This document shows positions 3,277 through 61,379 of a stretch of 64,000 bases of DNA, in pieces. The translations under genes and the position numbers were made by a program. Location of the stretch: NCBI RefSeq assembly GCF_006345805.1, contig NC_043010.1, positions 24,738,001 to 24,802,000 on the forward strand. Reading direction: 5' to 3'. The notes below the pieces were generated by a model that was not told where the DNA came from, did no database searches, and was given only the letters and a program-made list of their open reading frames with translations. This DNA comes from Octopus sinensis (lineage: Eukaryota). The stretch's first letter is position 1. Every line of letters starts with the position of its first letter.

Positions 3277-3396
3277 ATGTTAAAACCAATGTTAAATATC
3301 AGAATTTTCTTGTTTCCATTTTTGGTACTTCTCGTGATAGTATTTTCTGTCAAAGAAACCATTGCAGTGCCTGTCGGCAAAAAAAGTGTTTGTGAG
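3277..3396 (+). CDS. Gene A coding exon 1: signal peptide (MLKPMLNIRIFLFPFLVLLVIVFSVKETIAVPVGKKSVCE)
   Basis: ATG at 3277, hydrophobic core, and a strong donor GAG|GTAAGC (phase 0). It is 120 nt, the same as the paralogous exon at 48643, and both end K-S-[VI]-C-E. An acceptor-like ttttaag ends at 3257, suggesting an upstream UTR exon. Confidence 0.88.
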
Positions 3397-7474: not shown

Positions 7475-8394
7475 CTTGCCCAATGTTCCGATCTATTGTC
7501 CCTTTTTCTATTCTCTACTGCAACCACACTAAGGCACCAATTTAAAGGGTTTCGTCGAGCCAACTGATCTTTTTCTATCGAACTTAGGAAAGTTACGGTG
7601 CCGTTAACAAACCAACACCGGCTTGTCAAGCGGTGGAGGACGGACACAAACGCAAATACACATAGACACGCACATACACACACACACACATATACATCCG
7701 ACGGGCTTCTTTTAGTTTTCGTCTAGCAAATCCATTCTTATGTAGGAGACACTTCCCCAAGGTGGCGTGCAGTGGGATGGAAACCAAAACCAACAGGTTG
7801 AGACTGAAGCTTCTTACCAAACAGCCACGTCTGGACAAAAAAGTTTAATGCAAGTTTTATTTTATTTTATTCTCTTGCGTGTTTCAATCATTTGACTGCG
7901 GCCGTGCTGGAGCACCGACTTTCGTCGAACAAATCGACCCCAGGACTTATTCTTTGTAAGCCTAGTACTTATTCTATCAGCATCTTTTGCCGAATCACTA
8001 AATTACGGGGATGTAAACATTCAAACATCGGTTGTCAAGGACAGACACCCAAATACATACATACATACATATATACATACATACATACACACATACATAC
8101 ATACACATACATACACATACATACACACACATACACACACACATACACACACATACATACACACACATACATACACACATACATACACACACATACACAC
8201 ATACATACACACATACATACATACACACATATATATATACGACGGGCGTATTTCAGTTTCCGTCTACCAAATCCACTCACAAGACTTTTGTCGGCCCGAG
8301 GCTATCGCAGAAGACACTTGCCTCAGGTGCCTTTCAGTGGGACTGAACCCGGGACCATGTTGTTGGGAAGAAAGCTTCTTGCCACACAGCCACT
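7475..8394 (-). mobile_element. Two adjacent SINE family 1 copies (7475-7830 and 7870-8394)
   Basis: Both show tail + (CA/TACA)n + head on the minus strand. Confidence 0.85.
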
Positions 8395-9390
8395 ACAACT
8401 CTTTTCCAGTTTTGTACTTTTTTATTTCCTATATACTTATAAAACTTTTATTGCTTTTTTCTTTTTTTTTAATTTCATTTGTCACTTTTACAGCTGCCTT
8501 GTAACTTCTTCACAAAGAATTTATCAGATATTCCAATGCCAACTTCCGTTCTTCCAATACTTATTACATTACACACGTTAATAAGAATTGTCATAAAACG
8601 TTGAACACAATTGAGATTTCTTTCGCTTCTTAATTTCCGGCTGTAAATAACAGCTAATGTTATTTACGTTAAATTCACATCAATATATCCACTAACTTGT
8701 ACAGAAAGTTTTCACTAGATATTATTCTATCGCCAAAGAGACCGACCGTATCAAAACTAAATATAGCGAATTAAGGAACAAAATTGACAACACTAAGGTG
8801 TTCGCAAGGATGCTTTTAGAAAATAGAACCCCTTGAAGCAGTAATTAGAACGTGGTCAAAGGGGATCGAAGTAAAATAAGAACAGAACAAAGGGGTCATC
8901 TAACCACCGCCAGGATTCCAGATATTTCAGGATCCTTCATTTAAGTAAATTTGTTGCCTATGCGAGTTGTTATAGGAAGAGAGAAGAACTACACACACAG
9001 ATCACCGATTCGAAATCTACTTGAAGGTGCTACTTATCCCAGATATGAATCCCTGATCCCGACAGAATATGGCAGAATGACAGAATACTTGAGTGGAAAT
9101 TCCATCAAATGATAACGTCGAGAATCCTATGGAATGAATAAAATATAAAAGGTTTTACATAGTGCAATCTGCCCTTTACATACATTTGGATATTTACAAA
9201 TGCACTGGTATCGCCTATTAAAATATATCTCGATATATGTCAGAATAAAGAAATTATGGTTTCTGTCCATACCTTCATTAGAATTAATGTAAGTGACGTA
9301 TTTAAGAAGCCATATTTATAAGTCATCCGCCATTAGGCACTATCAATCACTTTAAGTATCACCATTTATCAAGATATTATTTAAAAAGAA

Positions 9391-10170: not shown

Positions 10171-10459
10171 GTATTCTCGAACCATACTGTGATGCTGAAA
10201 AATTCAACAATAATTTACTCAAGTGTAACAAACACACTAACTTCATCTTTCCCACTGAAAGACTCATTTCTGTTCACTCTGGAACATTACATATGTCCAA
10301 GGAAAGATGACCGCACACCAGCCACGCAGGAATGTTTCATGAAACACCCAATGAAGCTGACCCATATTACATACACAACTGAAGCTCTCATAGGCATCGT
10401 AATTCTTCCATCAGATATGGACTGCTCACACTGCGTGGTACAATGGATCATTGAACCAG
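10171..10459 (+). CDS. Gene A coding exon 2: AA15 LPMO-like (chitin-binding type 4-like) beta-domain core, without copper histidines
   Basis: Acceptor ttctcttctag|GTA (phase 0) and donor CCAG|GTAAAT (phase 1); 289 nt. Translation VFSNHT...YICPRKDDRTPATQECF...LPSDMDCSHCVVQWIIEP resembles the AA15 motifs FEFRxCP, TQECL and LPxxLxCxHCVLQW. It aligns gap-free with 49583-49871. Confidence 0.9.
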
Positions 10460-10517
10460 GTAAATATACGTATTGACCGCACACCGTTATATCTTTCGCA
10501 GTTTCTCTTCTCTTATA

Positions 10518-10975: not shown

Positions 10976-11612
10976 CTTCTGAACCAATAAGGTATCGAAA
11001 CTGAAGTTTAACGTTATCAATTTACACCTTTTCCTTTGGAATCGGTGTGTCACTGGGCACAAACAAACAAAAATAATAAAAAGATTATTCTGTGGACAGG
11101 CTAAAATGTATAATGTTTGTGAAATATGTGTCTATCGTTTCTTGAAGTACGTTTTTTTACTTTTTTATTTATTTATTTATTTTGGTCTTGAACCAAAGCA
11201 TCTGACTATTTTTCTCCTACCTCATTTGCATGAAGAATATGTAGCAGAAATTTTGATAAAAATTACCTGAGATTCTTTATGTGGTTAATAATACAATTTA
11301 CAGACCCAATTTATGAAAACTTAATACAAATTTGACAAACGGTATTATTTTATTACAAAATAAATTTTGAAATTTCAGCAGATTTGCAATTATATAATTG
11401 TAATAATGGTTTGTTTCTGTTTAATTTTTTCATCAATGAGTTCTAATTCTTAACTTATAAACATAATGCAAAGCTCTAAGTAGCGACATTGGTTCTGAAT
11501 AGCAATCGTTATGGTAATTCAAATATTTAAGTTTCAACAAATCTACTGAACGAAGAAAAATCCGGCAATGTTTTTTATGTTCGTTACTTACATGGTTTAC
11601 TTCTCCACTCAT

Positions 11613-11895
11613 GCGCAGGAGTGGCTGTGTGGTAAGTAGCTTGCTTACCAACCACATGGTTCCGGGTTCAGTCCCACTGCAAGGCACCTTGGGCAAGTGT
11701 CTTCTACTATAGCCTCGAGTCGACCAAAGCCTTGCGAGCGTATTTAGTAGACGGAAACTGAAAGAAGTCTGTCGTATAAAAAATCCCGTCAGAATAAGTA
11801 CTAGGCTTACAAAGAATAAGTCTTGGGGTCGATTTGCTCGACTAAAGGCGGTGCTCCAGCATGGCCGCAGGGAAATGACTGAAACAAATAAAAGA
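11613..11895 (+). mobile_element. SINE family 1 with internal deletion
   Basis: Head gcgcaggagtggctgtgtgg... joined directly to the tail. Confidence 0.85.
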
Positions 11896-12359
11896 ATTAT
11901 AATTCCGTTCTCTAAATTTACCTTGATTATAAAAGCTTAACTTATCTCACACTGTGAAGTCTGTACAGGTAAAACCATAGCAGCTTTGCTTTATTTTTCT
12001 TTAACATAGATTCTTTAATGCGATGAGGTTTTCGATACAGTTCCATTGCACATCATCTTAGGCAAGAACAAGGAGTTATGGGCCTTTAACTTTTTGATGG
12101 AGTAGCAGGGACGCTATCTTAACATAACAACGTGCCTTTGGCATACCAAGATTGCCGGTATACCAACGTCCTCCAGTACTTACAACATACGATTTCTTAT
12201 ATAAGAACAAATCTTATATAGGAACAATCTTATATAAGAACAAGAGACTCAGATACTCCTTCAGCGTCAAATATACTAGTTAAGTTATAAAATAGAGAAC
12301 ATTCAGTAAGCCATATGCTATGATGCACCACATATAATACTATGTTAACTATATATATA

Positions 12360-13653
12360 CGAGGGGCGTTCAATAAGTAATGCCCCTGACCCACTTCCCA
12401 TTGCAGTAGAACAACGAAACTTAGCACAGTTATTAGTATTTTTCTACATAGGAACCACCCAGAGTTACGCATTTCTCCCATCGTTTGATGCAGCTCTGGA
12501 GACCGTTTTTGTAGAAGACCCCCAGCTTGGTCCTCCAACCACGACGTGACTTCAGAAATCAAGGCTGCATCATCTGTGAAACGCTTTCCCTTCAGAAACA
12601 ACTTCATGGCTGGGAAGAGGTGAAAATCAGAGGGTTCAAGGTCAGGAGAGTAGGGGGGATGGGGAGGAGTTCATAGCCGCACGCCTGTGCTTCTGATCTG
12701 GCGACACGCGAGTTGTGGACCGGAGCGTTGTCCTGCAGGAGGAGGATGCCTTTTCTGATCTTGCCCTGCCTCTTGATTTTGATAGCTTCTCTTAATTTCC
12801 TCAAAAGTGAAGAATAATAGGCTCCTGTAATTGTGGTACCCTTTGCCGGGAAATCTGTCATCACTACTCCGTCCTGGTCCCAGAAGACTGAGCATGTCCT
12901 TGCCAGCGAAGGGCTGCACCCTTGCCTTCTTTGGAGGAGGTGAGTCACGGTGCTTCCACTGCATTGACTGGGCTTTGGTCTCTGGATCATAGTGATTGAC
13001 CCAGGTTTCATCCTGTGTAATCAGTCTTTTGAAAAATTTTGACTCATCTTCTTGGCACATCTCCAAATTCATCCTCGAGCACTCGACGCGTTCTTGCTTC
13101 TGGAAAGGTGTGAGTAACCTGGGAATCCATCTGGCAGACACCTTTTGCATATGCAAATGGTCATGAATGATAGTTTCCACAGACCCGGTACTAATCTTGA
13201 CCTCATGGGCTATTTGGCGAATTGTTATGCGTCGATCTTCCAAAATGGCAGCCTCAACTTGACGGACAGATGCCTCATCAATGGCAGAAGGAGGGGGGCG
13301 ACCAGATCTGGGAGCTGTTTCCACAGAGTTCCGACCATGTTTGAATTTACGATGCCAGGGTTTTACAAGGTCATATGATGGGGCATCATCACCATAAGTT
13401 ACTTTCATTTCATCAAATGTCTCCCGTGGTGTGCGTCCTTTCAAATACAAAAACCGGATCACTGCTCGACACTCAACAGGCTCCATTTCACACTTGACTC
13501 AGTTCAAACACCTGTAAATCAGAAACCACAATTATTTCAGAGCTGTAATTTGCCACTTAATCTATAGAGATATAAATAATTGCACAGACAAAATTTCAGC
13601 TAGATCAAACAACTGCAAGTGGGTCAGAGGCATTACTTATTGAACGTCCTTCG
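12360..13653 (-). mobile_element. Mariner (DD34D) DNA transposon, near full length, frameshifted transposase
   Basis: About 37-bp TIRs CGAGGGGCGTTCAATAAGTAATGCCCCTGACCCACTT, with a TA flank at both ends; 1294 bp. ORF starts at 13486 (MEPVECRAVIRFL...) and carries WIPRLLT, ITQDETW and LLQDNAPVH motifs spread over three frames. Confidence 0.95.
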
Positions 13654-14599: not shown

Positions 14600-14621
14600 C
14601 TCTGTAATAAATATATATATA

Positions 14622-14652
<31 letters not shown>

Positions 14653-14697
14653 GCTATAACCATACATACATGCACATACACACACATACACACATAT

Positions 14698-14900
14698 ACT
14701 CTTTTACTCTTATACTTGTTTCAGTCATTTGACTGCGGCCATGCTGGAGCACCGCCTTTAGTCAAACAAATCGACGCCAGGACTTATTCTTTGTAAGCCT
14801 AGTACTTATTTTATCGGTATTTTGTCAAACCGCTAAGTTACGGGAACGTAAACACACCAGCATCGTTTGTCAAGCGATGGTGATGAGAGAAACACAAACA
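14698..14900 (-). mobile_element. SINE family 1 tail
   Basis: tttgactgcggccatgctggagcaccgcc... Confidence 0.85.
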
Positions 14901-14927
14901 CACACACACACACACATATATATATAC

Positions 14928-14995
<68 letters not shown>

Positions 14996-15000
14996 ATATG

Positions 15001-15042
<42 letters not shown>

Positions 15043-15048
<6 letters not shown>

Positions 15049-15324
15049 TCCACGGTTGCCGGCAACTGCCTCCCGCCCGCTAATACTGATGTTGCAGGCC
15101 TTCATGTCCCGTTGCAAACATCCTTGTAACGTAAGAGCGGTCTACCCACAGACCTAGTACCCCTAGCAAGCTCTCCGTAGAGTATGTCCTTGGGGATTCT
15201 GCCATCTTTCATACGGCTAACATGCCCAAGCCATCTCATACGTCTTTGTGTGAGGAGTGCAAACATGCTTGGTATTCCTGCTTGCCTGAGGACATCTTTG
15301 TTGGGGATATGGTTCTGCTATTTG

Positions 15325-15325
<1 letters not shown>
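15043..15325 (-). mobile_element. RTE-clade LINE 3' ORF remnant
   Basis: The minus strand translates to [49 protein letters not shown], typical of the RTE ORF2 C-terminus. Confidence 0.8.
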
Positions 15326-15377
<52 letters not shown>

Positions 15378-15612: not shown

Positions 15613-16265
15613 TGAACTTCACATCAAGCACGAACCCGAAAAACTATGCTGTATGTATGAATCTCACCGTAGAAGCACGTTCTAAATTCACCCGTACCGA
15701 TATTGACTTAACACCTGTATCGAAAAAAAAAGTCACTGGTGAAAGCGAAATCAAATGTACCGGAAACGGAAATTATACTGACTTAGCAGGTATAAGCAAA
15801 TGGTGCACAAAACACTGCTCAAATGGCAACTGCCTATCAAAATATTGCAAGTGTGACAACCTGCAAGATATAAAATTGGCATATCCTTGTATAACTACCC
15901 CAATATATTATGGGCTACCTGGTATAGAAGACTGGTGTGACATCAACTGTGCTAGGGGATTTTGTCCATATACACATTGCGACTGCAGCGGCAAAACTTA
16001 CCCGACAACCACGACGGCACCTACAACAACACCAACGACATCACAGACCACTACACCAACAACAACACCAACGACAACACCAACAACAACGCCAGGTACC
16101 ACGCAAAGTACAACCCCAGAGCCGATTTGTGATCCAGTTGACACATACGAAATTGTTCCTGGCATGGATATGTGGTGCAATGTCAACTGCAAGGCTGGGT
16201 TCTGCCCAGAGTCACATTGCACATGTCGTCCTGGTGGCTCTCCAGGAACAACAACGAGTCCGTAA
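15613..16265 (+). CDS. Gene A coding exon 3: end of LPMO-like domain, three 33-aa six-Cys modules and a Thr/Pro-rich linker
   Basis: Strong polypyrimidine acceptor ttcttttcattttctattctag|TG (phase 1, matching exon 2). Modules C-x15-C-x3-C-x4-C-x4-C-x-C, e.g. [18 protein letters not shown]. In-frame TAA at 16263-16265 overlaps a possible donor CC|GTAAGA. Confidence 0.9.
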
Positions 16266-16269
16266 GAGG

Positions 16270-16400
16270 ACTGCATCATACAAATATATATATACATACA
16301 CACAGACAGACAGATGTATGTAAATATATATGTGTATATATATATATATGTATGTATGCATATATGTGTGTATATATATACATCTATGTTTGTATGTATG

Positions 16401-16476
<76 letters not shown>

Positions 16477-16777: not shown

Positions 16778-16958
16778 CCATCATTATCATCATCATCATC
16801 ACCATCATCATCATCGTCGTCGTCGTCGTCGTCGTCATCGTCATCATTATCATCATCATCATCATCATCATCCTCATTATCATCATCATCATCATTATTA
16901 TCATCATCATCATCATCATCATTATTATTATTATTATTGTTATTATTATTATTATTAA

Positions 16959-16995
<37 letters not shown>
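16778..16995. repeat. Compound trinucleotide repeat (CAT)n-(CGT)n-(CAT)n-(TAT)n
   Basis: Direct reading; it explains the poly-N/D/H/I/M ORFs. Confidence 0.95.
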
Positions 16996-22530: not shown

Positions 22531-22621
22531 TCCTTGACAACAACAACAGCAGCAACAACAACAGCGGCAGCAACAGCAACAGCAACAAAAGTAACAGCAA
22601 CAACAACAGCAGCAGCAACAG

Positions 22622-22810
22622 TGGAGGCGTAATGGCCCAGTGGTTAGGGCAGCGGAATCGCGGTCGTAAGAACGCGGTTTCGTTTCCCAGTCCCGGCATT
22701 GTGAGTGTTTATTGAGCAAATACACCTAAGCTCCACGAGGGTTCGACGGCGGGTGGTGGTGAACCCCGCTGTACTCTTTCACCATAACTTTTTCTCCCTC
22801 TTTCTTCCTA
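22622..22810 (+). mobile_element. SINE family 3, 5' half
   Basis: ggaggcgtaatggcccagtggttagggcagcgg... homologous to 9677. Confidence 0.85.
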
Positions 22811-22857
22811 CTTCTGCCACAAAGCAGAGGAGCCATGGAGCTCTTTCTCTTTCTTTC

Positions 22858-23255
22858 TCTCTTTTACTTGTTTCAGTCATTTGACTGCGGCCATGCTGGA
22901 GCACCGCCTTTAGTCGAGCAAATCGACCCCGGGACTTATTCTTTATAAGCCCAGTACTTATTCTATCGGTCTCTTTTTTGCCGAACCGCTAAGTAACGGG
23001 GACGTAAACACACCAGCATCGGTTGTCAAGCAATGCTAGGGGGACAAACACAGACACACAAACACACACACATATATATATATACATATATACGACAGGC
23101 TTCTTTCAGTTTCCGTCTACCAAATCCACTCACAAGGCATTGGTCGGCCCGGGGCTATAGCAGAAGACACTCGCCCAAGATGCCACGCAGTGTGACTGAA
23201 CCCGGAACCATGTGGTTGGTTAGCAAGCTACTTACCACACAGCCACTCCTGCGCC
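22858..23255 (-). mobile_element. SINE family 1, full length
   Basis: Complete head (ggcgcaggagtggctgtgtggtaag), short (TA/CA) spacer, and tail. Confidence 0.92.
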
Positions 23256-23508
23256 TATGGTGTGGTAAACTTTCAGACCCTAGTCTAGATTGCCAATCCT
23301 CTGTACTCCAGGATGGTTCAGCTCTCCACTCGTTAAAAGCCACCGTTTACGGAATGAGGATAACAACGTAGCTTTCGCGCCCGTGCAACTGCCAGTCTAT
23401 CGCGTGTGGTGGGTGGACCTTCAAGTTGCCACACGCATCCTTAGTAGCTCAGAGTAGGCTCGAATTAGAAATTATTCTTTGTGGCTAATGGCGTGAGTCC
23501 TCATTGGA

Positions 23509-26338: not shown

Positions 26339-26577
26339 CTATTGTATTCTTAATTACAATAGCGACAACTTGGATTTCTTCCATGTTTTTGCTCTACTAG
26401 AGTATTTGAGTAAAATTGTATTAACGTGTCCGACTGATTAAAATTCTATTTATTTATTTGTGCAGCTGAGGATAGCCCTGTATTTAAATTGATGTAATGA
26501 TTGGATTGTTCAATTAAATGGAGCCGCTTGAAACGGTCGTACTGCATCCCTTTTTGATATCTTGTTGCCTATTTTGA

Positions 26578-26633
<56 letters not shown>

Positions 26634-28086
26634 GATGGACTTGTTTCAGTTTCCGTCTACCAATTCCACTAACAAGACTTTGTTAGTCAGCCCGAGACTA
26701 TAGTAGAAGACACTTGCCCAAGGAGCCACTGCAGCACTATTTTCTGCTTGAGCAGTAGAACCATAATTCTGAGAAACTTTCAAGGCTATTTCCAAGGCCT
26801 GCGTTTATTCCACGATTCAAACCTAAGCTAGAATTTTGCTTCCTTGTTATCTGGTTCATATAGGAGTAGAAGAAATTCCAGATGCGCAAGAGAGGCTAAA
26901 ATAATCAAGGCGGTGCTCCAGTATGGCCGCAGTCAAAATGACTGAAAAAATTTAAAGAATAAAAGAAAATTTAGAAAATTACTGTTTTATAATCTCACAG
27001 CGAAAGATATTCAGCAACAGTACTTTGGAGTAAAGATTGCTTGCCAACATAACATGGCAGTCCTGATTTAGGACGAATGTTGCTGTTATTTTAGCCCCAG
27101 GAGACATCGTCTCCAGCTGGCTTACATTTTCGAACAAGGGAATCTAGCACTCCAACTCAGCTCAAAACAATATCGCGATTTCCGGGTTATTTCCCTTCAT
27201 CGGCATAATAATTGTTCGGTCAGAGGTGGCGCTGCCAAATTCCCGTTCGAAATATATAGTTTTCAAAGTGACAACTAGTCACTAATCTATAAATTAGAAA
27301 TTAGAAAGTCACTATATATATAAATTACATGCGTCCTAAATCAGGACTACCATGCTATGTTGGCAAACAACCTTTACTCTAAAAGAACATTTGTCACTGT
27401 ATATGTCAGCCTAATACTTCTAAATTTACCGTTAAGCTGACATGCTCAAGAGATCTTTGGTGTTTATTCAGCAAGAAACTCCATAGTCGATTGTTTAGAA
27501 AACGACTTCAATGGTTAGTTGAAGGAAAGTTTTAAAATAATTAAAGTGTCATCATAGGTAGTGCATACACGTGAGGAATCGCTGTCTTCTTTGAATGTAT
27601 TAATTCAGTCAACTGTTAAAATCCAACAAGACAAGCGGCCAGTGTTTAAAGAGATCCGGGAGATATAAATATATTGCTATGAATACGCTGTAAAGTAACC
27701 AGCTTTCTTTCTTTTGAGATAGATCGTCATTTCACCAAAAACTTTCGATAACAAAACAAAGAAAAACAAATACAAAAAAAGATCAAAACGGGGAGCGGAC
27801 CCCCATGAACAATATTTAAAAGATTACACAATGCAGTATGGTTATTATCACTCCCAACTTACTATGGAAGCTGTTTTGATCGTCAAACTAGTCATGACAT
27901 TGTCACGTGATCAAGCTTTTTTGTTACATTTCTTTATGAGCTACGTGTTCGGTCAACAGTTACACTTCAGTGAATTCACATAACTAAAATTATATCACGG
28001 AACCGGATCAGGATATGCCACCTCATTTGCTTCGAAATACATACATACATGCATACATACATACATACATACATACAAAGGTTAAT

Positions 28087-39397: not shown

Positions 39398-39648
39398 CTC
39401 TTCTTTCACCACTTAAACATCTTTCGAAATTTGATCAACAACTTCCACAAGTGACCTAAGGCTTATCCCGGTCACCCAAATTCATTCTGTAGAAGCGTCT
39501 GTAACTGATCCAGTATTTAGCACCTTCCACGATTTTATGTGATACATTCTTTGTTCCAGCATAGTATCCGCACACATAATAGAAATATTCTGGTGAATTG
39601 TTGCATCTTCTTGTAGCCATGGTCAAAACAAATTATGTTCACGATATA

Positions 39649-40034
39649 GGTGGAGTGGCTATGTGGTAAGTAGCTTGCTTACCAACCACATGGTTCCGGG
39701 TTCAGTCCCACTGCGTGGCATCTTGGGCAAGTGTCTTCTACTATAGCCTCGGGCCGACCAAAGCCTTGTGAACAGATTTGGTAGAGGAAAAGTCCATCGT
39801 ATATATGTATATATAAATGTATGTGTGTGTATATGTTTGTGTGTGTATATGTTTGTGTGTCTGTGTTTGTCCCCCCAACATCACTTGACAACCGATGGTG
39901 TTGTGTTTATGTCCTCGTAACTTAGCGGTTCGGCAAAAGAGACCTATAGAATAAGTACTAGGCTTACAAAGAATAAGTCCAGCATAGCCGCAGTCAAATG
40001 ACTGAAACAGGTAAAAGAGTAAAAGCGTAAAAGA
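39649..40034 (+). mobile_element. SINE family 1, near full length
   Basis: Head, short TA/TG spacer, and tail ending gtaaaagagtaaaag. Confidence 0.9.
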
Positions 40035-42244: not shown

Positions 42245-42636
42245 CATACATACATACACACATACAAAACACACTGTGAAATTGGGAAATTGGGCTTCTC
42301 AGAACCAGAAGGGAGAAAGCTGATTCGAAGACTACAGATCCAATCCATCACTGGAATTGTAAAAATCTGTAAAACCTTCCAAAAGTTTATCATTTAAGAA
42401 TAATTAAGCATTCTAGACATGCAACTGTATGCACAAGAATACATACATAAAACATATAAATCTATACATACATGCATACATACATACAGACCTGATATAA
42501 TGATTTAGGATAGAGAAGAGAAACTGTGCACAGTTGTGGAAATTAGCTGCCCAACGGATGTTAACACAAAGCTGAAGATCAGTGAAAAAAAAAGAACACC
42601 TATGCTGAACTATTCAGAAATCTGTATCACTGGAAC

Positions 42637-42902
42637 TCTCTTTACTCTTACTCTTTAATCTTTTACTCGTTTCAGTCATTTGACTGCGGCCATGCTGGGG
42701 CGCCGCCATTAGTCGAGCAAATCGACCCCAGGACTTATTCTTTGTAAGCCTAGTACTTATTCTATCGGTCTCTTTTGCCCGCTAAGTTACGGGGGACGTA
42801 AACACACCAGCATCGGTTGTCAAGCGATGTTGGGGGAACAAACACAGACACACAAACACACACAGACAGACACACACATACACACAGACACACACATACA
42901 CA

Positions 42903-42944
<42 letters not shown>

Positions 42945-42958
42945 ACACACATATATAT

Positions 42959-43021
<63 letters not shown>

Positions 43022-43160
43022 GACGGGCTTCTTTCAGTTTCGGTCTGTCAAATTCACTCACAAGGCTTTGGTCGGCCCGAGGCTATAGTAGAAGACACTT
43101 GCCCAAGATGCCACGCAGTGAGACCGAACCTGGAACCATGTGGTTGGTAAGCAAGCTACT
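42637..43160 (-). mobile_element. SINE family 1 with an expanded internal microsatellite
   Basis: Tail 42637-42850, (CA)/(TA)n, head 43020-43160. Confidence 0.88.
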
Positions 43161-43499
43161 TTATTTCATTTTATTTGCCATAAAAGCAGTATACAGAGAA
43201 GCCGCGGGCTGGACAAGACATTAATGATGCGAATGATAATAATACAAGATGATAAAAATGGGAGAAGACAGTAAGCGCCCGCCGACACCCTGCTTTTCTA
43301 AAACATTGTTCATTAAAAACAACATATTTAGAGGTATTAAACCTCTTACAAATATATACAAAATTTGGACTAGAAGTCCATCACAATGGAAACAAAATTT
43401 ACACATATGGAGGCGATAACCCTCTTACATTACTCCCTCAATTAACTTTTCTGCGGCCTGCAGGTATTCCTGCAACCACCAATCGGAGCCAAAAAAAGT

Positions 43500-43724: not shown

Positions 43725-45430
43725 ACCTGTGGAAAAAATCTTTTCTTTCCACCTGCGAAGGCCACTCTGGACTATCAATAAAAATCGGATCCATCAGAAC
43801 CCGACTATCAAGATTATTTGCCACATACTCCTCAATCGCCCCTCCCTTGCGATAGAGGAATACAAATTCTTCATCACTTTCATTGAGAGAGACCTCAATT
43901 ACCTCGCTCGGTGGCACACCTCCAACCGACAAGGCTTCCTTCTTCTCCCCATCCGGTGGCACACATCCCACCGAAGGGATTTCGGGACATGCCGTTGCCG
44001 GCAATGCCTCGTTTTTCTTTTTCTTCTTTCTTTTCCCCTTTGCGACGGGAGGATGGAGTTCCTCCGACATGTCCGGAGGTCCCTCCTTCCCTCCCGCCAC
44101 CTCCGGGACCACGGCGGGCAACCATTGTTTCCCACCTTCTTTTTCTTAGTACCTTTTCTCGAGGAGGTTACCTCCTCCTCGACTTTCTCCCTCTCTCCCT
44201 CCAATAAAGGAGTAGGAGTCTCCGTTGGGGGAACAGTGGGTTTACAGTCATCAATCAACTGTTCCACGATCTTCGCCTGGTCCCTGCAACAGTTCTTCTT
44301 CATGTGCCCTGATTCTAGGCACAGGTGACACTTGGTAGGGCGTCCCTCGATGATTTCCGGGTGTCTGGATCCGGCCATTGTTAAGAAATCTGGTAAAACC
44401 AGATCTTCGGCCGATTGGGCCCATAGGGTCAAAATTGCTTTTGACCCGACCCAATCGACCGCAGGCAGTATTTTTACAGTCAAGAGCCTGGCAGGGCTAC
44501 CACCCAGGCCTAGACGGATAGAATCTTCTATCCATACAGCCTCTATACTGGGCGGTAGCCCACATACCCAGGCTCTTGTCAATTTACGCCCAACATAAGT
44601 GGGGAGAAACAAGATTTTCCTCCATCTGTAGGTTGGCTCACAAATTTCTGAGCCTCCGTAGGGGTGTCGAAAAGCACGCACTCCGTTGCGTACTTTGCAC
44701 CCCCTACAGATGAACCTATAAGTTGACTCAAATCCCGCCAACTCTTCTTCAATTTCTGAGGGAATACACAGATGGTGTCGCGGTCCTTGCAATAGGTCCG
44801 CAACAACACCGTTCTCTCATCATAGTTTTTTAACCACTCCTTGGGGGCCACAATTCGCCAATCTGAGGCTTTCTTACATTTGGTTGCCATTAATAAAATA
44901 AACTAAAATATAAAAGTCCACAACAAAATCAAAAATGTTCAAATAAAAGTCTCTAATGCAAACACAAAAAAGAACAGAAAGACAGACAAGAGAAAAGGAA
45001 CGAAGGAAGACAGTTCAAATGACAACAAAATTCAATTCTGGTAATCCTTTGTAACACAGTTAAAAATCTCTTGCAGCACTAAAATAGCAGCAAAAAATTC
45101 CTGCTTGTACTCCAAATGGTAAATTTCTGGTTGTACTCCAATTGGTAAAATCCCCGAAGTGCACACAGTCACATAAAATCATAAATTTTCGGAGGGAATA
45201 CACCCCCTCAAAACAAAACACAATTCTCACTACACAGTGAGTCTTTTTGCACGACCACAGACAGGCAAATAACCCAGTGGAGACCCTTGCTCGTCAAAAA
45301 TTATTAATTACCAACCAACGGACTCCACTGAGCTCCCCAAAAAAACAAACGCCTTACCTGTAGTCGTTCTTCAGGTTTTCAATATTTCTACATAGAACGA
45401 CGTGACTTCGGAGCGTATAAAAACGCGAAC
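43725..45430 (-). mobile_element. 5' part of a LINE: 5' UTR plus frameshifted ORF1 with a CCHC zinc knuckle (L1/Tx1-like)
   Basis: ORF1 starts at 44890 (MATKCKKASDW...KNYDERTVLLRTY) and continues in another frame to GRPTKCHLCLESGHMKKNC. No ORF2 follows. Confidence 0.75.
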
Positions 45431-48642: not shown

Positions 48643-48762
48643 ATGTTGAGGCACAAACATTTAACATTGCAGTTAGCAACCTTTCTTCTAATGGCGGGGT
48701 TTGCAACGTCAAACATAGAATATGGAGACAGTTTGCAAACAAAAACAAAAAGCATTTGTGAA
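48643..48762 (+). CDS. Gene B coding exon 1: signal peptide (MLRHKHLTLQLATFLLMAGFATSNIEYGDSLQTKTKSICE)
   Basis: ATG at 48643 and consensus donor GAA|GTAAGT (phase 0). It is 120 nt and 40 codons like gene A exon 1, and ends KSICE. Not listed in the ORF track. Confidence 0.88.
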
Positions 48763-49110: not shown

Positions 49111-49258
49111 ATTCTCCCTATTTCAAATTTTAAGGGATTGCATTCTTTTATTTTGTTTTTGTTTTTCTTTCTATTTCTTTACGATCCTGGAATCAAACGA
49201 GCAAGATGGGTTGATAAGTAAGCAACTTCGCTTTTCCTTTATTATTATCATTATTATT

Positions 49259-49460
49259 ATTCAGTAGTCTTGTTTTTATCACGTGCTTTCACGGCACTAC
49301 CGAGCGCAGCTCTGTGTGCCTTGGGTATGTGCCGTGGTTTGTTGAGATGCTCTTATTTTTACTGTATTGAAAGTGTTTTGCGTAGGGCTTCTTTCAGTTT
49401 CTATCTTCCAAATCTACTCACAAGGTTTTCGTCGGCCCGAGGCTATAATAGAAGCTTGCC
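49259..49460 (-). mobile_element. Dong family A 3' tip (49259-49386) joined to a SINE family 1 head fragment
   Basis: ttcagtagt...accgagcgcagctctgtgtgccttgggtatgtg matches 50752, 53031 and 53836. Confidence 0.75.
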
Positions 49461-49582
49461 CAAGCAACCATGCAGACACTCACGCTGGATTGTCCATGAA
49501 ATTGTTAAACAACAGGACGTAAATTTTTTTTAAATATTTGCATTTTCGTAATTTTATCTTTTTTCTTTCCCCCTTTTCTCAG

Positions 49583-49871
49583 ATATTCTCCAACCAAACT
49601 TTGTTACAAAGGAACGTCTCTATAATATACTCAAATAAAATGAATAACTTGACAGTATATTTTCAAATGAAAAACCCAGCAAGGTTCAGTGTAGATTTAT
49701 ACATCTGTCCTCGATCCGACAACCATAGAGCGGCAACACATGAGTGTCTGTCAAAAAGGAAACTGGAACAAATATTAGTGAGCTCCAACTCTTCAACAGT
49801 GATGGTCCTTGCGAAAATTCCGAAGGATCTCAGCTGTTCATATTGTGTGTTACAGTGGATCCTGACACAAT
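49583..49871 (+). CDS. Gene B coding exon 2: AA15 LPMO-like domain core, without copper histidines
   Basis: Acceptor tttccccttttctcag|ATA (phase 0) and donor CAAT|GTAAGT (phase 1); 289 nt. Translation IFSNQT...YICPRSDNHRAATHECL...IPKDLSCSYCVLQWILTQ. Confidence 0.9.
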
Positions 49872-49944
49872 GTAAGTTCCTGTTGTATTTTCACTATTTG
49901 TCTTGTCTTCGGCTCCTGTAGTCGATAAAGAAATTATTATAATA

Positions 49945-50751: not shown

Positions 50752-52920
50752 TTCAGTAGTTTTATTTTTTATAGCGTGCTTTTACTTCACTACCGAGCCT
50801 AGCTCTGTGTGCCTTGGGTATGTGCTGTGATTTGTTGTGATGCTCTGATGGTTATTGTGTGGAAAGTGTTCTGCGTAGGATGCGTGCAGTGCCTAGTAGT
50901 GCAATTTTCTGTATGTTATATGTGTTTGTAAGTCCTGGTGTTTTTGTTATGTATTTGTCTGAATATTTTTTTATCATGCCTAATGCAACTACTATGATAG
51001 GAATTGTTTCTGTTTTTAGATTCCACATACTGGTTACCTCTATTTCCAGGTCTTTGTATTTTGAAAGTTTCTCCATTTCTTTTAGAGACACGTTGTCATC
51101 TGCCGGTATTAATACATCAATTAGAAAGCATTTTTTTTCTTCATGATGTCTGACAACTATATCTGGTCTGTTGGCCTTAATTTCTCCATCTGTGTGTATC
51201 GGCATATCCCAGAGTATGGTTGCTTTCTCGTTTTCTGTGACCTTTTCTGGTGTGTGCCTATACCATCTTTTTTCTGTTATTCCATAATGTTGGCATAGCT
51301 TCCAGTGTATGTAGGTTCCAACTCTGTCATGTCTGTGAATATATTCCTTCTTAGCCAGGACTGGGCAGCCAGAGATAATATGATTTATTGTTTCTTGTCC
51401 ATCTCCACATATTCTGCAGTTACTTGTTATATTTCTTTTCATTACATGTTTTTGGTAATTTCCGGTGGGGAGGCTTTGGTCTTGTGCTGCAATTAAAAAT
51501 CCCTCTGTCTCTGCTTTGAGTCCTGAGCTTCTCAACCATTGCTGGGATTTTTCTTTGTCTATTTCTTTTGCATTTAGTTTAGTCCAGTATTTACCATGAA
51601 GGGGTTTTTCTTGCCATCTTTTTATCATGGTTCTTTGCTGTTCTAGTTTTAGTTTGGATTTCATTTGTTTTATAGCTTTTGTTGTTTCTTCATCTTCTTC
51701 TTCTTCTTCTTTATATTTGTTAGATGGTATGATTTCTTGTTTGTATTTGTCAGCTTCCTTAAATACTGAGAACAGTTTTTTGTTTTGCTCGTGTTTTGTC
51801 GCTATTTGGATCAGTTTTCCTTCCTTCTGAAGTAGATATTTTTGCAGTCCTATGGTGGTTATTTTATAGTAGTTTTCCAGCTGTATAAGGCCTCTACCAC
51901 CTTCTATATGTTGTATATATAGTCTTTCTATGTCAGATTTTGGGTGATGCATCCTAGATCCTGTCATTATTTTTCTTGTTTTCCTATCTAGTCCAGTTAA
52001 GGATATTGTAGCTGTAACTTATAACTGGGACTGCTAAATTGTTAATACCTATTATCTTGTTTTTAGCATTGAGCTCTGTTTTTAGTATTGATTTAACTCG
52101 TCTATAATATTCTTTTTTTATTTTCTCTTTCATTTGTGTGTGTTGTGTCTTATCTAGTTCATGGATTCCTAAGTATTTGTAAGTTTGGCTTTGGTCTAAT
52201 TCTTTTATTTCATTGGTTTTATCTAGTGTGATGTTGCTACTCTTAACTAGTTTTCCTCTTTTCATGGTTACTTTGGCGCATTTTGCTAATCCAGTTTTCA
52301 TATCTATTTCTTTGGTAAACCCATGAACTGTCTTTAATAGTGTTTCCAGCTGTTTGTCATTTGCAGCGTATAGTTTTAGGTCATCCATATATAAAAGGTG
52401 GCTGATCGTTTTGCCGTAACATTTATATCCGCATCCAGTTCTATTTAGCATATCAGATAGAGGTGACAGTGCCAAGCAGAAAAGGAGTGGAGAGAGCATG
52501 TCTCCCTGGAATATTCCTCTTCTAATGGGGATGGCTTTGGTTTTCATGAGTCCCTCTTTTGTTTGGAGCTGTAGCACTGTTTGACATTTATTCATAGAGT
52601 GCCCTATAAATTTTATAATTGTTGGTGCTACTTTGTTAATGGCTAGTGTTTCGAGGATCCATGTGTGGGGGATGCTATCAAACGCCTTTTTGTAGTCGGT
52701 CCAGGCCATACTGAGGCCTTTCTTCTTTCTGTGGCTGTCTTCAGCTATGGCTTTATTGATCATTAGTTGATCTTTACAGCCGTATGAACTTTTGCGGCAT
52801 CCTTTCTGTTCTTCTGGAAACAGGTTGTTTTCGTCTAGGTGCTTGTTCAACATTTGCGATATCACTGCAGTAAATGCCTTGTACATCGTAGGGAGACAGG
52901 TTATTGGTCTATAGTTTTTT
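50752..52920 (-). mobile_element. R4/Dong-like LINE (RT plus restriction-like endonuclease), family A, 5' truncated
   Basis: KKAFDSIPH, GIFQGDMLSPLLF and YMDDLKLY motifs. CCHC finger CRICG...ETINHIISGC, RHD, and RLE motif NRPDIVV...LIDV. Flanked by (TTA)n. Confidence 0.92.
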
Positions 52921-52985
52921 ATTATTATTGGTCTGTAGTTTTCTTATTATTATTATTATTATTAGTTTTCTTCTTCTTCTTCTTC

Positions 52986-53030
<45 letters not shown>

Positions 53031-53035
<5 letters not shown>

Positions 53036-53789
53036 TAGTTTTATTTTTATAGCGTGCTTTCACTTCACTACCGAGCACAGCTCTGTGTGCCTTGGGTATG
53101 TGCTGTGATTTGTTGTGATGCTCTGATGGAAATTGTATGGAAAGTGTTCTGCGTAGGATGTGTGCAGTGCCTAGTAGTGCAATTTTCTGTATGTTATATG
53201 TGTTTGTAAGTCCTGGTGTTTTTGTTATGTATTTGTCTGAATATTTTTTTATCATGCCTAATGCACCTACTATGATAGGAATTGTTTCTGTTTTCAGATT
53301 CCACATTCTAGTTACCTCTATTTCCAGGTCTTTGTATTTTGAGAGTTTCTCCATTTTTTTTGAGACACGTTGTCATCAGCCGGTATTGATACATCAATTA
53401 GAAAGCAATTTTTTTCTTCATGATCTCTGACAACTATATCTGGTCTGTTGGCCTTAATTTCTCTATCTGTGTGTATCGGCATGTCCCAGAGTATGGTTGC
53501 TTTCTCGTTTTCTGTGACCTTTTCTGGTGTGTGCCTATACCATCTTTTTTCTGTTGTTATTCCATAATGTTGGCATAGCTTCCAATGTATGTAGGTTCCA
53601 ACTCTGTCATGTCTGTGAATATATTCCTTCTTAGCCAAGACTGGGCAGCCAGAGATAATATGATTTATTGTTTCTTGTCCATCTCCACATATTCTGCAGT
53701 TACTTGTAATATTTCTTTTCATTACATGTTTTTGGTAATTTCTTGTGCTGCAATTAAAAATCCCTCTGTCTCTGCTTTGAGCCCTGAGC

Positions 53790-53790
<1 letters not shown>
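53031..53790 (-). mobile_element. Dong family A 3' fragment, copy 2
   Basis: Near-identical to 50752-51535, with an internal deletion at about 53722; (TTA)n flanks. Confidence 0.92.
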
Positions 53791-53827
<37 letters not shown>

Positions 53828-53835
53828 GTTATTAT

Positions 53836-54179
53836 TCAGTAGTTTTATTTTTATTTTTATAGCGTGCTTTCATTTCACTACCGAGCGCAGCTCTGTGTGC
53901 CTTGGGTATGTGCTGTGATTTGTTGTGATGCTCTGATGGAAATTGTATGGAAAGTGTTCTGCGTAGGATGTGTGCAGTGCCTAGTAGTGCAATTTTCTGT
54001 ATGTTATATGTGTTTGTAAGTCCTGGTGTTTTTGTTATGCATTTGTCTGAATATTTTTTTATCATGCCTAATGCACCTACTATGATAGGAATTGTTTCTG
54101 TTTTCAGATTCCACATTCTAGTTACCTCTATTTCCAGGTCTTTGTATTTTGAGTTACCTCTATTTCCAGGTCTTTGTAT

Positions 54180-54182
<3 letters not shown>
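53836..54182 (-). mobile_element. Dong family A 3' fragment, copy 3
   Basis: Near-identical 3' end, with a short direct duplication at the 5' junction. Confidence 0.9.
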
Positions 54183-54246
<64 letters not shown>

Positions 54247-54329: not shown

Positions 54330-56938
54330 ATGTTTGACTTTTGCTTTATGTCTGTACAAGTTGGCTCCAAGTCTCACCTAGAGACCTCAAGAGACAACAG
54401 GTTGGAAGTTCACGTTGTTGTTATGCCTAGTGTGCCATATATTTGGGGGGGGTTGTGTTGTACTAGTGAATGTCTAATACGTAGATTTTTTTTTTAAAAG
54501 TTTGTTTTAAAACTTGGGATTACAAAGAGAGTATTTTGCGTAGGATATGAGCAGTTCCCATGAGCACTATCTTTTGAATTTCTGCCATTTTGGGGTTTCC
54601 TGGTATCTGAGTTAGGTAGCAATCAGCCCCTTTCGCTATCATTCCCAGGGCACCTATGACAACAGGTATTGTTTTAGTCTTCAGCTTCCACATTTTGCTG
54701 ATTTCTATTTCAAGATCTTTATATTTGCTCAGTTTTTGGTAGGTCTTGACAGATACGTTTATATCGATTGGGACAGTCATATCAATGAGGAGGCATGTTC
54801 TTTGTCTGAAGTCTTTCAATATGATGTCTGGCCTATTTGCATCTATCTTTCTGTCAGTTTGAATGGTGAAGTTCCAGAGGAGTGAGATGTGCTCATTTTC
54901 AAGTACTGGAGGTGGATTGTGTTCCCACCAGTTTTCTTCATGGGGCAAATCCAGGTTTTTGCAAATTACCCAGTGAATATATTGTGCAGCTCTATCGTGC
55001 CTGTTGAGGTACTCTGTAGGCGCTAGAAGACTGCATTTGGAGACAACATGATCAATGGTTTCATTTTGTTGTCGGCATACACATGTTGGGCTACTGCCGT
55101 TCTTTAATATGTTGGCCTGGTAGTTTCTTGTTGGTAGGCATTGATCTTGAGCTGCTATGATAAACCCTTCTGTTTCAGATTTTAAGCCAGAGGCCATTAG
55201 CCATTGATGGGTCAGGGCTTTGTCAATATCTGCATTATTCGCTCTCTTTGGGTATTTGCCATTGAGAGGTTTTTCTTGCCATTTATCATTCAGAATATCT
55301 AAGGCCGCAGTTTTGGCACAGGTTTTCATGCGCTTAGCTTTTTCTGTGCTTGTTTCTTGTATGTATTCGGAATTCATTTAGATATTCCTTTGCCTGTTTT
55401 GTTACTGAGTATGATGCTTTCTTGTTTTCATGTTTTGAGACAAGTTTTAACATCCAGTCCTCAGACTTTTTCAGGTAGGTGCCTATGCCAATTGTAGCAA
55501 TATTCATTGTTATTGCCAGTTGCAGAAGACCACGGCCTCCCTCTTTTCTTGGCAGATAAAGTCGTTCTGTATCTGCCTTAGGGTGGTGCATTCTATGCAT
55601 TGTCAACAGTTTTCTTATTTTTCTGTCGAGCTGACATATTTCAGTAATTGACCAGTTAACGATATTGAAACTGTAAGTCACGACTGGTATGGCAAATGCA
55701 TTGATCGCTTCGATCCTGTTTCTTGCATTCAGCTCTGTCTTGAGTATTGCTCTCACTCTTCGATAGCATTCGCTCCTGATCCTTTCCTTCATCTCTGAAT
55801 GCCTTATTCCGTTCCCTTCAATTACCCCTAGGTACTTGTAGCTCTCTGTTGGGTCTAGTTCTTTTATGACATTCTGCTGGTCAAGGTTAACGTTAGATGT
55901 TTCTTTCATTTTTCCTTTGATAAAGGTAGCTTTTGCACATTTATCGAGGCCGAATTGCATTCTGATGTCGTCACTGAATTGTTTGACTATCGCTAGTAAG
56001 CCCTTGAGTTGTTGGTCATTTTTTGCAAAAAGCTTTAAATCATCCATGTAAATGAGATGATTTATATTTTTATCAAACATTTTATACCCGTACTGCGCGT
56101 CATTGAGCAGTTTTGAGAGAGGTATTAAGGCTAAACAAAAGGTGTGGTGACAGTGAGTCACCCTGGAAAATGCCACACGAAATTTTTACATCCCCAGCAT
56201 TTAGGGATTCATTGTCACTGTAAAGAGTTAGTGTGGTTCTCCATGATCTCATGCTTACAGTGAAAAAGTTTCGCAGAGTAGGTGCTATCTTATACATTTC
56301 CAGGCATTTCCTAATCCAGCTATGTGGTAGGCTATCAAAAGCGTTTTTATAGTCTATCCAGGCTATTGATAAGTTTTTGTGTCGTTTGTGACAATCTTCT
56401 AAGATCATCTTATTGATGAGTAGTTGATCTTTACAGCCGTAGGATCCACGTTTACATCCTTTCTGTTCATTAGGGAATATGCTGCTGTCTGTTAAAAAAC
56501 TATAAGTATATTCCGTCAGGACAGATGTTAGCGTTTTATACATAGTTGTTAAGCAGGTTATGGGTCTATAGTTTTTTGGTTCATTTGTTTCTTCACTTTT
56601 TGGAAGCAGGAATGTTAACCCATTAACTAGCCAAGGAGGCATCCTACTAGGGTGTTGCAAAACATCATTGTACAGTTCTGTTAGCAGTTCATGGCTCTCT
56701 GGGAAGACATTCAGCCAGAAGTTAGGAATTTTATCCTTTCCTGGAGACTTCCATTTGCCTGACCTCCTGAGAGCAGATCTTATATCTTCTACCTTGACAC
56801 CCTCCCACTTTTGCTCTTCTAATGGATCCAGTTCTGTAGATATTCTATCAATCCAGGGGGCCTTTTCGTTGTGTGTTTTTTCTTCTGCCCCAAATTTTAT
56901 TCCAAAATCCTTGCACTTCTTCTTTTGATGGTACAGAC
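54330..56938 (-). mobile_element. R4/Dong-like LINE family B, 5' truncated, few frameshifts
   Basis: NYRPITCL, KNAFDSLPH, GIFQGDSLSP, YMDDLKLF, RHDRAA and NRPDIIL...LIDM across ORFs 56100-56660, 55334-56176 and 54520-55377. Confidence 0.92.
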
Positions 56939-56989
56939 CTTATTATTATTATTATTATTATTATTATATTATTATTATTATTATCATTA

Positions 56990-59613: not shown

Positions 59614-59649
<36 letters not shown>

Positions 59650-59660
59650 GCTGCTGCTGC

Positions 59661-59695
<35 letters not shown>

Positions 59696-59874
59696 TTGTT
59701 GTTGTTGTTGTTGTTATTATTATTATTTATTATTATTATTATTATTATTATTTATTACTTACTATTATTATTATTATTAAATAATAATAATAAAAATAAT
59801 AATAAAAATAATAATAAATATTATTATTTTTATTTTTTTATTTTTTTTATTATTATTTTTTATTATTATTATTA

Positions 59875-60614: not shown

Positions 60615-61315
60615 AAACTCTCAGCTTATTTTGTTGGATATTCTGATAAGTGTCAGCTGTCCACAGCCAGCAAACTAAGGCGACACTTGTTTCCAATACT
60701 AATTTTTAGTCTCTGTCAAGTCGCGGTAAGGACCTCAGACAGGTTGTTTTTTAAGCAGTATGCATACAGTTTCAAGTAAAGGCCATTTTTGCAATACACC
60801 AAGATTGTAGAGTATTTCTAAAGTGTCCAGATGTTTCTTCAGGTAGAGTGGTATTGAACCCAATGCTCCGATGACAACAGGAACACCCTTTATGTTTGAC
60901 TCTCGCAGCTTCCATATCTTGGCGATCTCACTTTTCAGGTTTCCATATTCTTTCTTTCATCATAATATGTTGATTTCCTGACGCTGCTACAACGATTATC
61001 AAGAACCCTAAAGGCTATATATCCGCCCTTCGGTGTTCTAACATCTTGTCTTTCAGGAAGCCAAAGTCCCAAATCTTTGCCTTCCTGTTATCGTCTGTTA
61101 CTTTTTCCGGTGTACGCTGGTACCAAGCAGCAATTTCCTCATATCCATACTTCTGGTATAGTAGCCAGTGAAGGCTTTGAGCTACCCTTTCGTGTCTGCG
61201 TTTGTACCCTTTTTGCGCAAGTTTTTCACAAGCACTAGCAATATGAGTCACGCTTTCGACTTTCTTCCTGTACATTCTGCAGAGGTTCGTTGCACTTGTG
61301 GACTTCGAGATATAT
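60615..61315 (-). mobile_element. R4/Dong-like LINE 3' fragment
   Basis: LCRM...ESVTHIASAC, KRRHERVAQSLHW, IWDF...RRADI and PVVIGALG. Confidence 0.8.
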
Positions 61316-61379
61316 GAAGTCAATTATATTTTTAGGGTGGAATTCGAAGTAGATAAAACCACAAATAACAGCAGCTCTG

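Follow-up and report, generated by a model that had tools for sequence, protein, structure and literature searches.

Lytic polysaccharide monooxygenases (LPMOs) of family AA15 are required in insect moulting and are widespread in marine invertebrates. Many of them end in a small cysteine-rich tail that has no name, no Pfam or CAZy family and no structure. The present work concerns a stretch of 64,000 nucleotides of Octopus sinensis (contig NC_043010.1, positions 24,738,001 to 24,802,000 of the forward strand; hereafter the window, with positions counted from its first letter), in which two genes, here called A and B, carry repeated six-cysteine modules of this kind. It is judged probable that these modules belong to the insect-type six-cysteine family and are placed on secreted, non-catalytic octopod proteins that are likely multivalent chitin binders.

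The closest described system is found in insects, where C-terminal 6-cysteine repeats have been reported for the group I LPMO15-1 (Qu et al. 2022, PMC9156745, and a 2025 follow-up, PMC12955341). These repeats share with the octopod modules the framework C-x15-C-x3-C-x(n)-C-x4-C-x-C and the tandem arrangement C-terminal to an AA15-type domain. The third spacer is x6-9 in insects and x4 in the octopod modules (x5 in one copy, B2), and the insect tails have two copies whereas gene A has three and gene B at least four. In the octopod proteins a Thr/Pro-rich linker also splits one pair of copies, and what stands upstream of the modules is the remnant of an AA15 domain, shortened and lacking the histidine brace, not an active LPMO. 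When the tails of Tc/Lm/OfLPMO15-1, taken from the supplement of PMC9156745, were compared with a profile of the module, each gave two domains with scores of 57-60 bits, and the segment PG[MV]xxWCxxNC...CPxxxCxC aligned throughout the insect tails and the profile. For these reasons, the octopod modules are assigned to the insect LPMO15-1 repeat family. The module has thus already been described in insects, without a name; what is new here is chiefly that the module is fused to an LPMO remnant that lacks the histidine brace, and further that the third spacer is x4 and the copies are more numerous.

Other small cysteine-rich appendages are more distant. CBM14 (peritrophin-A), a carbohydrate-binding module (CBM), is likewise a small extracellular domain with six cysteines that is attached, in many cases as tandem copies after Ser/Thr-rich linkers, to chitinases of animals and to some AA15 LPMOs, but it differs in cysteine spacing and in length (about 65 residues). 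The insect repeats, too, were called unrelated to CBM14 (PMC9156745, PMC12955341). A Pfam search of the modules matched no family above noise even at E<=10, and no carbohydrate-binding family, CBM14 included. In their paper on the AA15 LPMOs of Aphanomyces astaci, Sabbadin et al. 2021 (PMC8393829) describe X473 and X474, which, compared by description, resemble the module in having fewer than 40 residues with conserved cysteines (six in X473) and a C-terminal position on AA15 LPMOs. According to that paper they occur also on GH18 and GH19 chitinases and are proposed as chitin-binding without testing; they differ from the module in being reported there as confined to Saprolegniales. The AA15 appendages listed by Sabbadin et al. 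2018 are CBM1 and CBM14, and the present module is not among them. The DgCBPs of the squid beak were considered as relatives and rejected, given that the literature ties them to the Rebers-Riddiford (R&R) chitin-binding consensus.

The module copies and their family

The pattern C-x15-C-x3-C-x4/5-C-x4-C-x-C was sought in all six frames of the window and gave seven matches, all on the + strand and all in the terminal exons of the two genes. The copies, placed by pattern scan and alignment and delimited from the first cysteine (C1) to the last (C6), are three in gene A within 15756-16226 (A1 at 15756-15854, A2 at 15888-15986 and A3 at 16128-16226) and four in gene B within 63458-64000 (B1 at 63458-63556, B2 at 63590-63691, B3 at 63758-63856 and B4 at 63902-64000, its final base being the end of the window). 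In the alignment of the seven copies the six cysteine columns are invariant and the spacing is x15/x3/x4/x4/x1 in all except B2, which has x5 in the third spacer. A Tyr or Phe at position 7 and a Trp or Phe immediately before C2 are present in all seven, and G-x-C-P in most. A segment of A2 is nearly identical in the Argonauta orthologue. The strict pattern gave seven matches in the six-frame translation versus none in 200 local shuffles, and a profile built from the copies finds 366 proteins; on both grounds a chance origin is excluded. With a looser pattern, the sole additional matches in the window were translated microsatellites of cysteine codons.

Modules A2 and A3 are separated by a Thr/Pro-rich, mucin-like linker, recognised in the translation of 15996-16124 (+). 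Its DNA is a tandem repeat with a period of 12 nucleotides, rich in ACC and ACA, at 16018-16094, and the linker is likely to be O-glycosylated.

An earlier sequence-only reading of this DNA had described seven copies divided three and four between two genes, the longer third spacer of one of them, the aromatic positions of the consensus and the Thr/Pro-rich stalk between modules 2 and 3 of gene A, and all of these were recovered. The span that it gave, 15766-16226, is correct at its end and begins 10 nucleotides after the first cysteine of A1; it covers gene A only. It had also proposed a profile built from the seven copies and a structure prediction, and both are reported below.

The profile was searched against 1.84 billion cluster representatives and matched 366 proteins at E<=1e-3, 71 at <=1e-10 and 7 at <=1e-30, the best at 5e-152. 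Instances and partner domains were counted in 151 proteins, made up of the best 150 of the 366 matches and the protein P0001. All six cysteines are present in 307 of the 403 instances; the remainder are alignment truncations, and no loss of a cysteine pair was found among them. The spacing 15/3/4/4/1 occurs in 211 instances; second among the complete patterns comes the one whose third spacer is x6. The family consensus is C[RHK][AG][VI]Gx[WYF]xGxPG[MIL]DxWCxxNCxxGxCPxxHCxC, with Trp, Tyr or Phe at position 7 in 89% of the copies, Trp at position 16 in 90% and His at position 30 in 38%. The named members come from Nematostella, the gastropods Haliotis, Littorina, Nucella and Batillaria, the bivalves Saccostrea, Dreissena, Sinanodonta and Pinctada, cephalopods, the annelid Paralvinella, the nemertean Lineus and a trombidiid mite. 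The strongest match of the search was P0002, a protein of 1459 residues encoded on a metagenome contig of 152 kb in ENA, which is built of little else than the module and in which the profile recognises 21 copies.

Word-indexed searches were less informative. With gene A exon 3 a single match was obtained, the candidates being swamped by the Thr/Pro linker; the 41-column module alignment gave no candidate, and an alignment of the cephalopod family gave only P0008, an Argonauta protein. A sequence search of the PDB, with a single protein and with a 144-sequence profile, returned only non-significant small disulfide-rich peptides and no solved relative.

The module is presumably a unit of about 35 residues held by three disulfides. 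The AlphaFold2 (AF2) model of A3, calculated from an alignment of 144 module sequences, has a predicted local distance difference test score (pLDDT) of 91.3 and the order beta-alpha-alpha-beta, with a strand at residues 2-5, a short helix at 7-10, a helix at 15-24 that contains W-C2xxxC3 and a strand at 33-36 that contains C5xC6. A Foldseek search of this 37-residue model against the PDB and BFVD gave nothing usable, the query being near the size limit of the program, and the null result is no proof of a new fold given that the query was probably too short. The arrangement can be compared with the cysteine-stabilised alpha/beta (CS-alpha/beta) fold of defensins and scorpion toxins, in which the disulfides join C1-C4, C2-C5 and C3-C6. 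In both, CxxxC, GxC and CxC follow one another in the same order, and the predicted helix of the module would hold the CxxxC and its terminal strand the CxC. The module differs in its C3-C4 loop, between helix and strand, which has 4 residues and is far shorter, in its additional N-terminal strand and short helix, and in its use as a repeat in large proteins. The closest CS-alpha/beta matches were all non-significant, with E of 0.8-5 for the Pfam family Scorpion_toxin_alpha-beta and of 0.11-4 for the beta-KTx and scorpine entries of the PDB. The framework thus resembles CS-alpha/beta weakly, and a distant structural resemblance, not membership, is possible.

The domains upstream of the modules

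In both genes the modules lie C-terminal to an AA15-derived domain that is truncated and lacks the catalytic residues; neither the LPMO origin nor the lost copper site had been noticed in the sequence-only reading. In tblastn, AA15 LPMOs match exon 2 of gene A, for example P0070 at 5e-9. An alignment of the short domain from six sequences (genes A and B, three cephalopod proteins and one nemertean protein) was compared by hhalign with 15 AA15 domains and gave a probability of 98.2% and an E of 5.4e-14 over template columns 81-169 of 194. The Pfam model of the family, PF03067 (LPMO_10), matched P0010 and P0070 over the full length at its gathering score and left gene A, P0008 and P0021 unmatched. 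With respect to the AA15 LPMOs (TdAA15A, PDB 5MSZ; PF03067), the N-terminal domains are homologous to the C-terminal half of the fold, and they keep the motifs ICP..ATQEC and CxxCVxQW and the cysteine of the last strand.

The domains of genes A and B lack about 80 N-terminal residues, including His1, and the entire HG.L.EPPSR...CGxCGD half is absent (alignment A6). There is also no His after the signal peptide in the exon 1 products of either gene. In the TA[NS]H.G strand, the column of the second brace His has F for gene A, A for gene B, and T, S and K for the other cephalopod sequences of the alignment. In addition, the loop TGNSWG...GCGPQEEF is deleted in both domains (alignment A6). In AA15 this loop holds a substrate-contacting Trp, according to the residue list of PMC12955341 in TcLPMO15-1 numbering, and it holds the axial aromatic as well. 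Judging from their sequences, both N-terminal domains derive from AA15 and are predicted to be unable to form the histidine brace and, since the brace cannot form, would not be oxidases.

The nemertean protein in the alignment, P0020 (Lineus longissimus XP_064622860.1), keeps the SH of the second brace His at about columns 50-58 of A6 and is alone in this among the members of the short, His1-less domain family, its cephalopod members having lost it. This protein may represent an intermediate stage of LPMO decay.

The AF2 model of the gene A domain shows a confident core of eight strands, with pLDDT of 84-96. Its top Foldseek match is TdAA15A (5MSZ), with E of 4.6e-4 over 114 columns, which is supportive and not independent, given that AA15 sequences were present in the modelling alignment. 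Two AA10 LPMOs, 7ZJB at rank 2 and 8C5N at rank 12, appear ahead of or among generic Ig-like domains.

Hosts of the module and its possible function

Pfam domains were sought in 108 module-bearing proteins, where LPMO_10 was found in 21 and GH18 in 3, with hardly any other family. When an iterative search was seeded with one AA15 domain, at least 57 of the 151 proteins proved to contain such a domain or the piece of it that the last exon encodes. In two of the GH18 hosts, P0001 and P0018, Thr-rich linkers connect the catalytic domain to the modules behind it, and in the third, P0011, three modules stand between two GH18 matches. Linkers rich in Thr, Pro and Ser that lead from the catalytic domain to the modules recur in relatives such as P0001, P0018, P0078 and P0128. 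Across animals the module is appended at the C-terminus of AA15 LPMOs and of GH18 chitinases, mostly as tandem copies and in many cases after such linkers.

These hosts agree with the statement, in the sequence-only reading, that similar tails occur on invertebrate chitinases and LPMOs. Its description of the module as unnamed or poorly characterised stands insofar as there is no Pfam model and no solved relative, and fails insofar as the repeats had been described before in insect LPMO15-1. The likeness to CBM24-type repeats of fungal mutanases that it had suggested is unsupported: no search gave any sign of a CBM24 or mutanase relationship, with no CBM24 reference compared directly, and no partner domain of the CBM24 kind occurs among the 150 best matches and P0001. 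A toxin fold, which it had named as an identity that would speak against its proposal, is represented only by the non-significant CS-alpha/beta matches described above, which do not refute that proposal.

The balance of the analysis leans towards chitin binding by the modules. This is suggested by the fact that the only recurrent partners are two unrelated families of chitin-active enzymes, by an architecture that is standard for CBMs, in which a Thr/Pro linker leads from the catalytic domain to a small disulfide module at the C-terminus, frequently present as tandem copies, and by the conservation of two aromatic positions. The products of genes A and B carry signal peptides and are for this reason taken to be secreted, and they are probably non-enzymatic chitin-binding proteins because their enzyme part has lost the copper site. 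The pair of genes is conserved between two octopod lineages. In the mechanism proposed here, genes A and B would give secreted proteins without catalysis, whose modules would bind chitin multivalently with the conserved aromatics at positions 7 and 16 as putative contacts, and the glycosylated linker would space the modules. The products might then coat, organise or protect chitin material, such as the beak, the radula, the cuticle of gut or suckers, or the egg envelopes, with no cleavage.

Several points weigh against this interpretation. The link of the module to chitin enzymes is circumstantial, and the papers on the insect LPMO15-1 repeats (PMC9156745, PMC12955341) did not test them in isolation. 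In about half of the proteins that carry the module no partner domain can be recognised, and many of these proteins are fragments of gene models. Four proteins of 2084-2616 residues (P0075, which comes from an ENA assembly, P0077, P0125 and P0140) are very long, rich in Ser, Thr and Asn and laden with repeats, and have no Pfam domain. These four end in two six-cysteine modules about 130-170 residues apart. Finally, the AA15 sequences included in the modelling alignment of the gene A domain may have biased its model towards the LPMO fold.

Such long proteins bring to mind a module that serves as a unit for protein-protein or matrix cross-linking, used in the manner of an EGF-like repeat, by which enzymes and structural proteins would be anchored in an extracellular matrix made of protein, not in polysaccharide. 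In favour of this role, some very long proteins rich in Ser, Thr and Asn, and some with EGF or cadherin domains, have the module at their end; octopod proteins that have lost catalysis still carry it; and one family member has 21 tandem copies. Cross-linking nonetheless leaves the enzyme partners unexplained, as the recurrent ones are only AA15 and GH18, two unrelated families that act on chitin; moreover, a small C-terminal disulfide module that follows a catalytic domain and a Thr/Pro linker is arranged as CBMs classically are, and the conserved aromatic positions suit stacking on sugars. This role is therefore considered unlikely.

The resemblance to CS-alpha/beta raises another explanation, namely that the module is a defensin-like or toxin-like domain with antimicrobial or channel-blocking activity, fused to carriers. 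The cysteine order C...CxxxC...GxC...CxC, the helix with CxxxC and the last strand with CxC in the model all fit it, and the best matches in Pfam and the PDB, although non-significant, are to CS-alpha/beta families. Against it are the lack of any significant match, the empty Foldseek searches of the PDB and BFVD and the C3-C4 loop of only 4 residues. Furthermore, among the named matches the module never occurs as a free short secreted peptide, being found as tandem C-terminal repeats of large enzymes, and it is conserved on LPMOs from cnidarians to insects, so that this explanation is regarded as very improbable. The strong enrichment on AA15 LPMOs, together with the common His at position 30, could also be read as a sign that the module aids LPMO chemistry, by electron delivery, copper handling or control of H2O2, and not substrate binding. 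A redox helper of this kind is most unlikely, given that GH18 hydrolases, which need no redox partner, carry the module too and that octopod proteins lacking a copper site have kept it; the six invariant cysteines are presumably in disulfides, and no further metal-ligand pattern is conserved.

Binding to chitin is thus the preferred reading of the module. A more far-reaching form of it is put forward only tentatively and falls short of being probable: the module would found a new CBM family, present across animals, whose compact fold has about 35 residues and three disulfides and is CS-alpha/beta-like, and it would have been recycled in octopods together with a copper-less half of the LPMO fold into lineage-specific, multivalent structural chitin binders.

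The locus and its implications

The identity of the module family and the gene structure of A and B are held with high confidence. Genes A and B are tandem paralogues with three exons each, an identical exon plan of 120 nucleotides, 289 nucleotides and the rest, and canonical splice sites. When one half of the window was compared with the other at the protein level, only two conserved coding pairs were found, the module exons and the exon 2 pair, the latter with 36% identity and E of 4e-25 between 10171-10473 and 49523-49918.

In gene A (+ strand), exon 1 (3277-3396; donor GAG|GTAAGC, phase 0) comprises 40 codons that begin with ATG and encode a signal peptide with a hydrophobic core and then a short mature N-terminus, the product ending in ...VPVGKKSVCE. 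Exon 2 (10171-10459, 289 nucleotides; acceptor tctag|GTATTC, donor CCAG|GTAAAT) encodes the core of the truncated AA15-derived beta-sandwich, with the motifs YICP..ATQEC and CSHCVVQW. Exon 3 (15613-16265), whose acceptor ttctag|TG completes a split GTG codon, encodes in order the last strand of the N-terminal domain, A1, A2, the Thr/Pro linker and A3, and ends with the stop TAA at 16263-16265. The assembled coding sequence is complete and in frame, with 353 amino acids.

Gene B, also on the + strand, follows the same plan. Its exon 1 (48643-48762, 40 codons; donor GAA|GTAAGT) encodes a signal peptide and ends in ...KTKSICE, the end of its product reading ...GDSLQTKTKSICE. This exon was located by pattern, as an in-frame Met followed by a hydrophobic stretch and Cys-x and then a GT donor, for which there was a single candidate; tblastn with the signal peptides of Argonauta, Octopus and gene A gave noise only. 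The length of 120 nucleotides and the end ...KS[VI]CE|GTAAG are common to exon 1 of both genes. Exon 2 (49583-49871, 289 nucleotides; acceptor ttctcag|ATATTC, donor CAAT|GTAAGT) encodes the truncated AA15-derived domain, and exon 3 (63336-64000; acceptor aatgtag|CAAATG), which continues past the end of the window, encodes the last strand of that domain followed by B1-B4.

The closest relatives of these genes are GAB1603675.1 (P0008) and GAB1603672.1 (P0015) of Argonauta hians and XP_029645183.1 (P0021) of Octopus sinensis. Exon 2 of gene B has 53% identity to residues 41-140 of P0008 and exon 3 has 53% identity to residues 141-361. In the Argonauta hians locus the orthologue of gene A, which has three modules, precedes that of gene B by about 4 kb, with orientation and order conserved, and the latter, read from the DNA, has five modules. 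In the deposited model GAB1603675.1 (BAAFZT010000032.1, 11864-12109) the module frame is left after CYVI for an Asn-rich tail. The genomic frame of BAAFZT010000032.1 runs on through a complete fourth module and a fifth, and for this reason the deposited model is probably mis-spliced at its 3' end. Given that the Argonauta orthologue has five modules, gene B, with at least four, probably has a fifth beyond position 64000.

Besides the genes, the window contains microsatellites, a mariner-like remnant, retrotransposon open reading frames (ORFs) and repeats that resemble short interspersed nuclear elements. The remnant of a mariner-like transposase lies in intron 2 of gene A at 12233-13498 (-), with an N-terminal part that reads 'MEPVECRAVIRFLYLKGRTPRETFDEMK...', and this copy is probably dead, its coding sequence being split over no fewer than three overlapping frames. 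Fragments of reverse-transcriptase and related ORFs, similar to retrotransposons without long terminal repeats, are found at 50855-52943, 53031-54212, 54523-56939, 57853-58907 and 61018-62779 (all -); several of them are near-duplicates, and they occupy most of the 13-kb intron 2 of gene B. Between the two genes, an ORF of 305 codons at 43902-44816 (-) has a motif resembling a CCHC zinc knuckle, 'CHLCLESGHMKKNC', and is similar to a retroelement gag. One short interspersed repeat is present in at least 10 copies on either strand, for example at 606-890, 1323-1990, 7808-8580, 11436-11937, 14611-15080, 22763-23368, 26558-26942, 39597-39998, 42586-43221 and 49222-49530, and part of its translated signature reads 'RRASFSFRLPNPLTR'. 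Microsatellites often come after its copies, and one copy lies directly upstream of gene B exon 2. Dense microsatellites are found at 15300-15377, 16280-16470, 16780-16990, 22537-22617 and 59616-59714; (TA)n occurs on both flanks of gene A exon 3, and the window also has long trinucleotide runs. Runs of the (TGC)n type translate as poly-Cys and mimic cysteine patterns in naive scans.

For the surveys of LPMOs in animal genomes this locus has a practical consequence, given that Pfam misses these octopod proteins and looser similarity searches could misscore them as enzymes. The tail found on many AA15 LPMOs is one family that extends from cnidarians to insects, is also present on GH18 chitinases and survives on octopod proteins without catalysis; its range, its GH18 hosts and this survival make it a well-defined candidate family of chitin-binding modules. 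The octopod genes would represent an animal case of an LPMO fold reduced to a non-catalytic scaffold.

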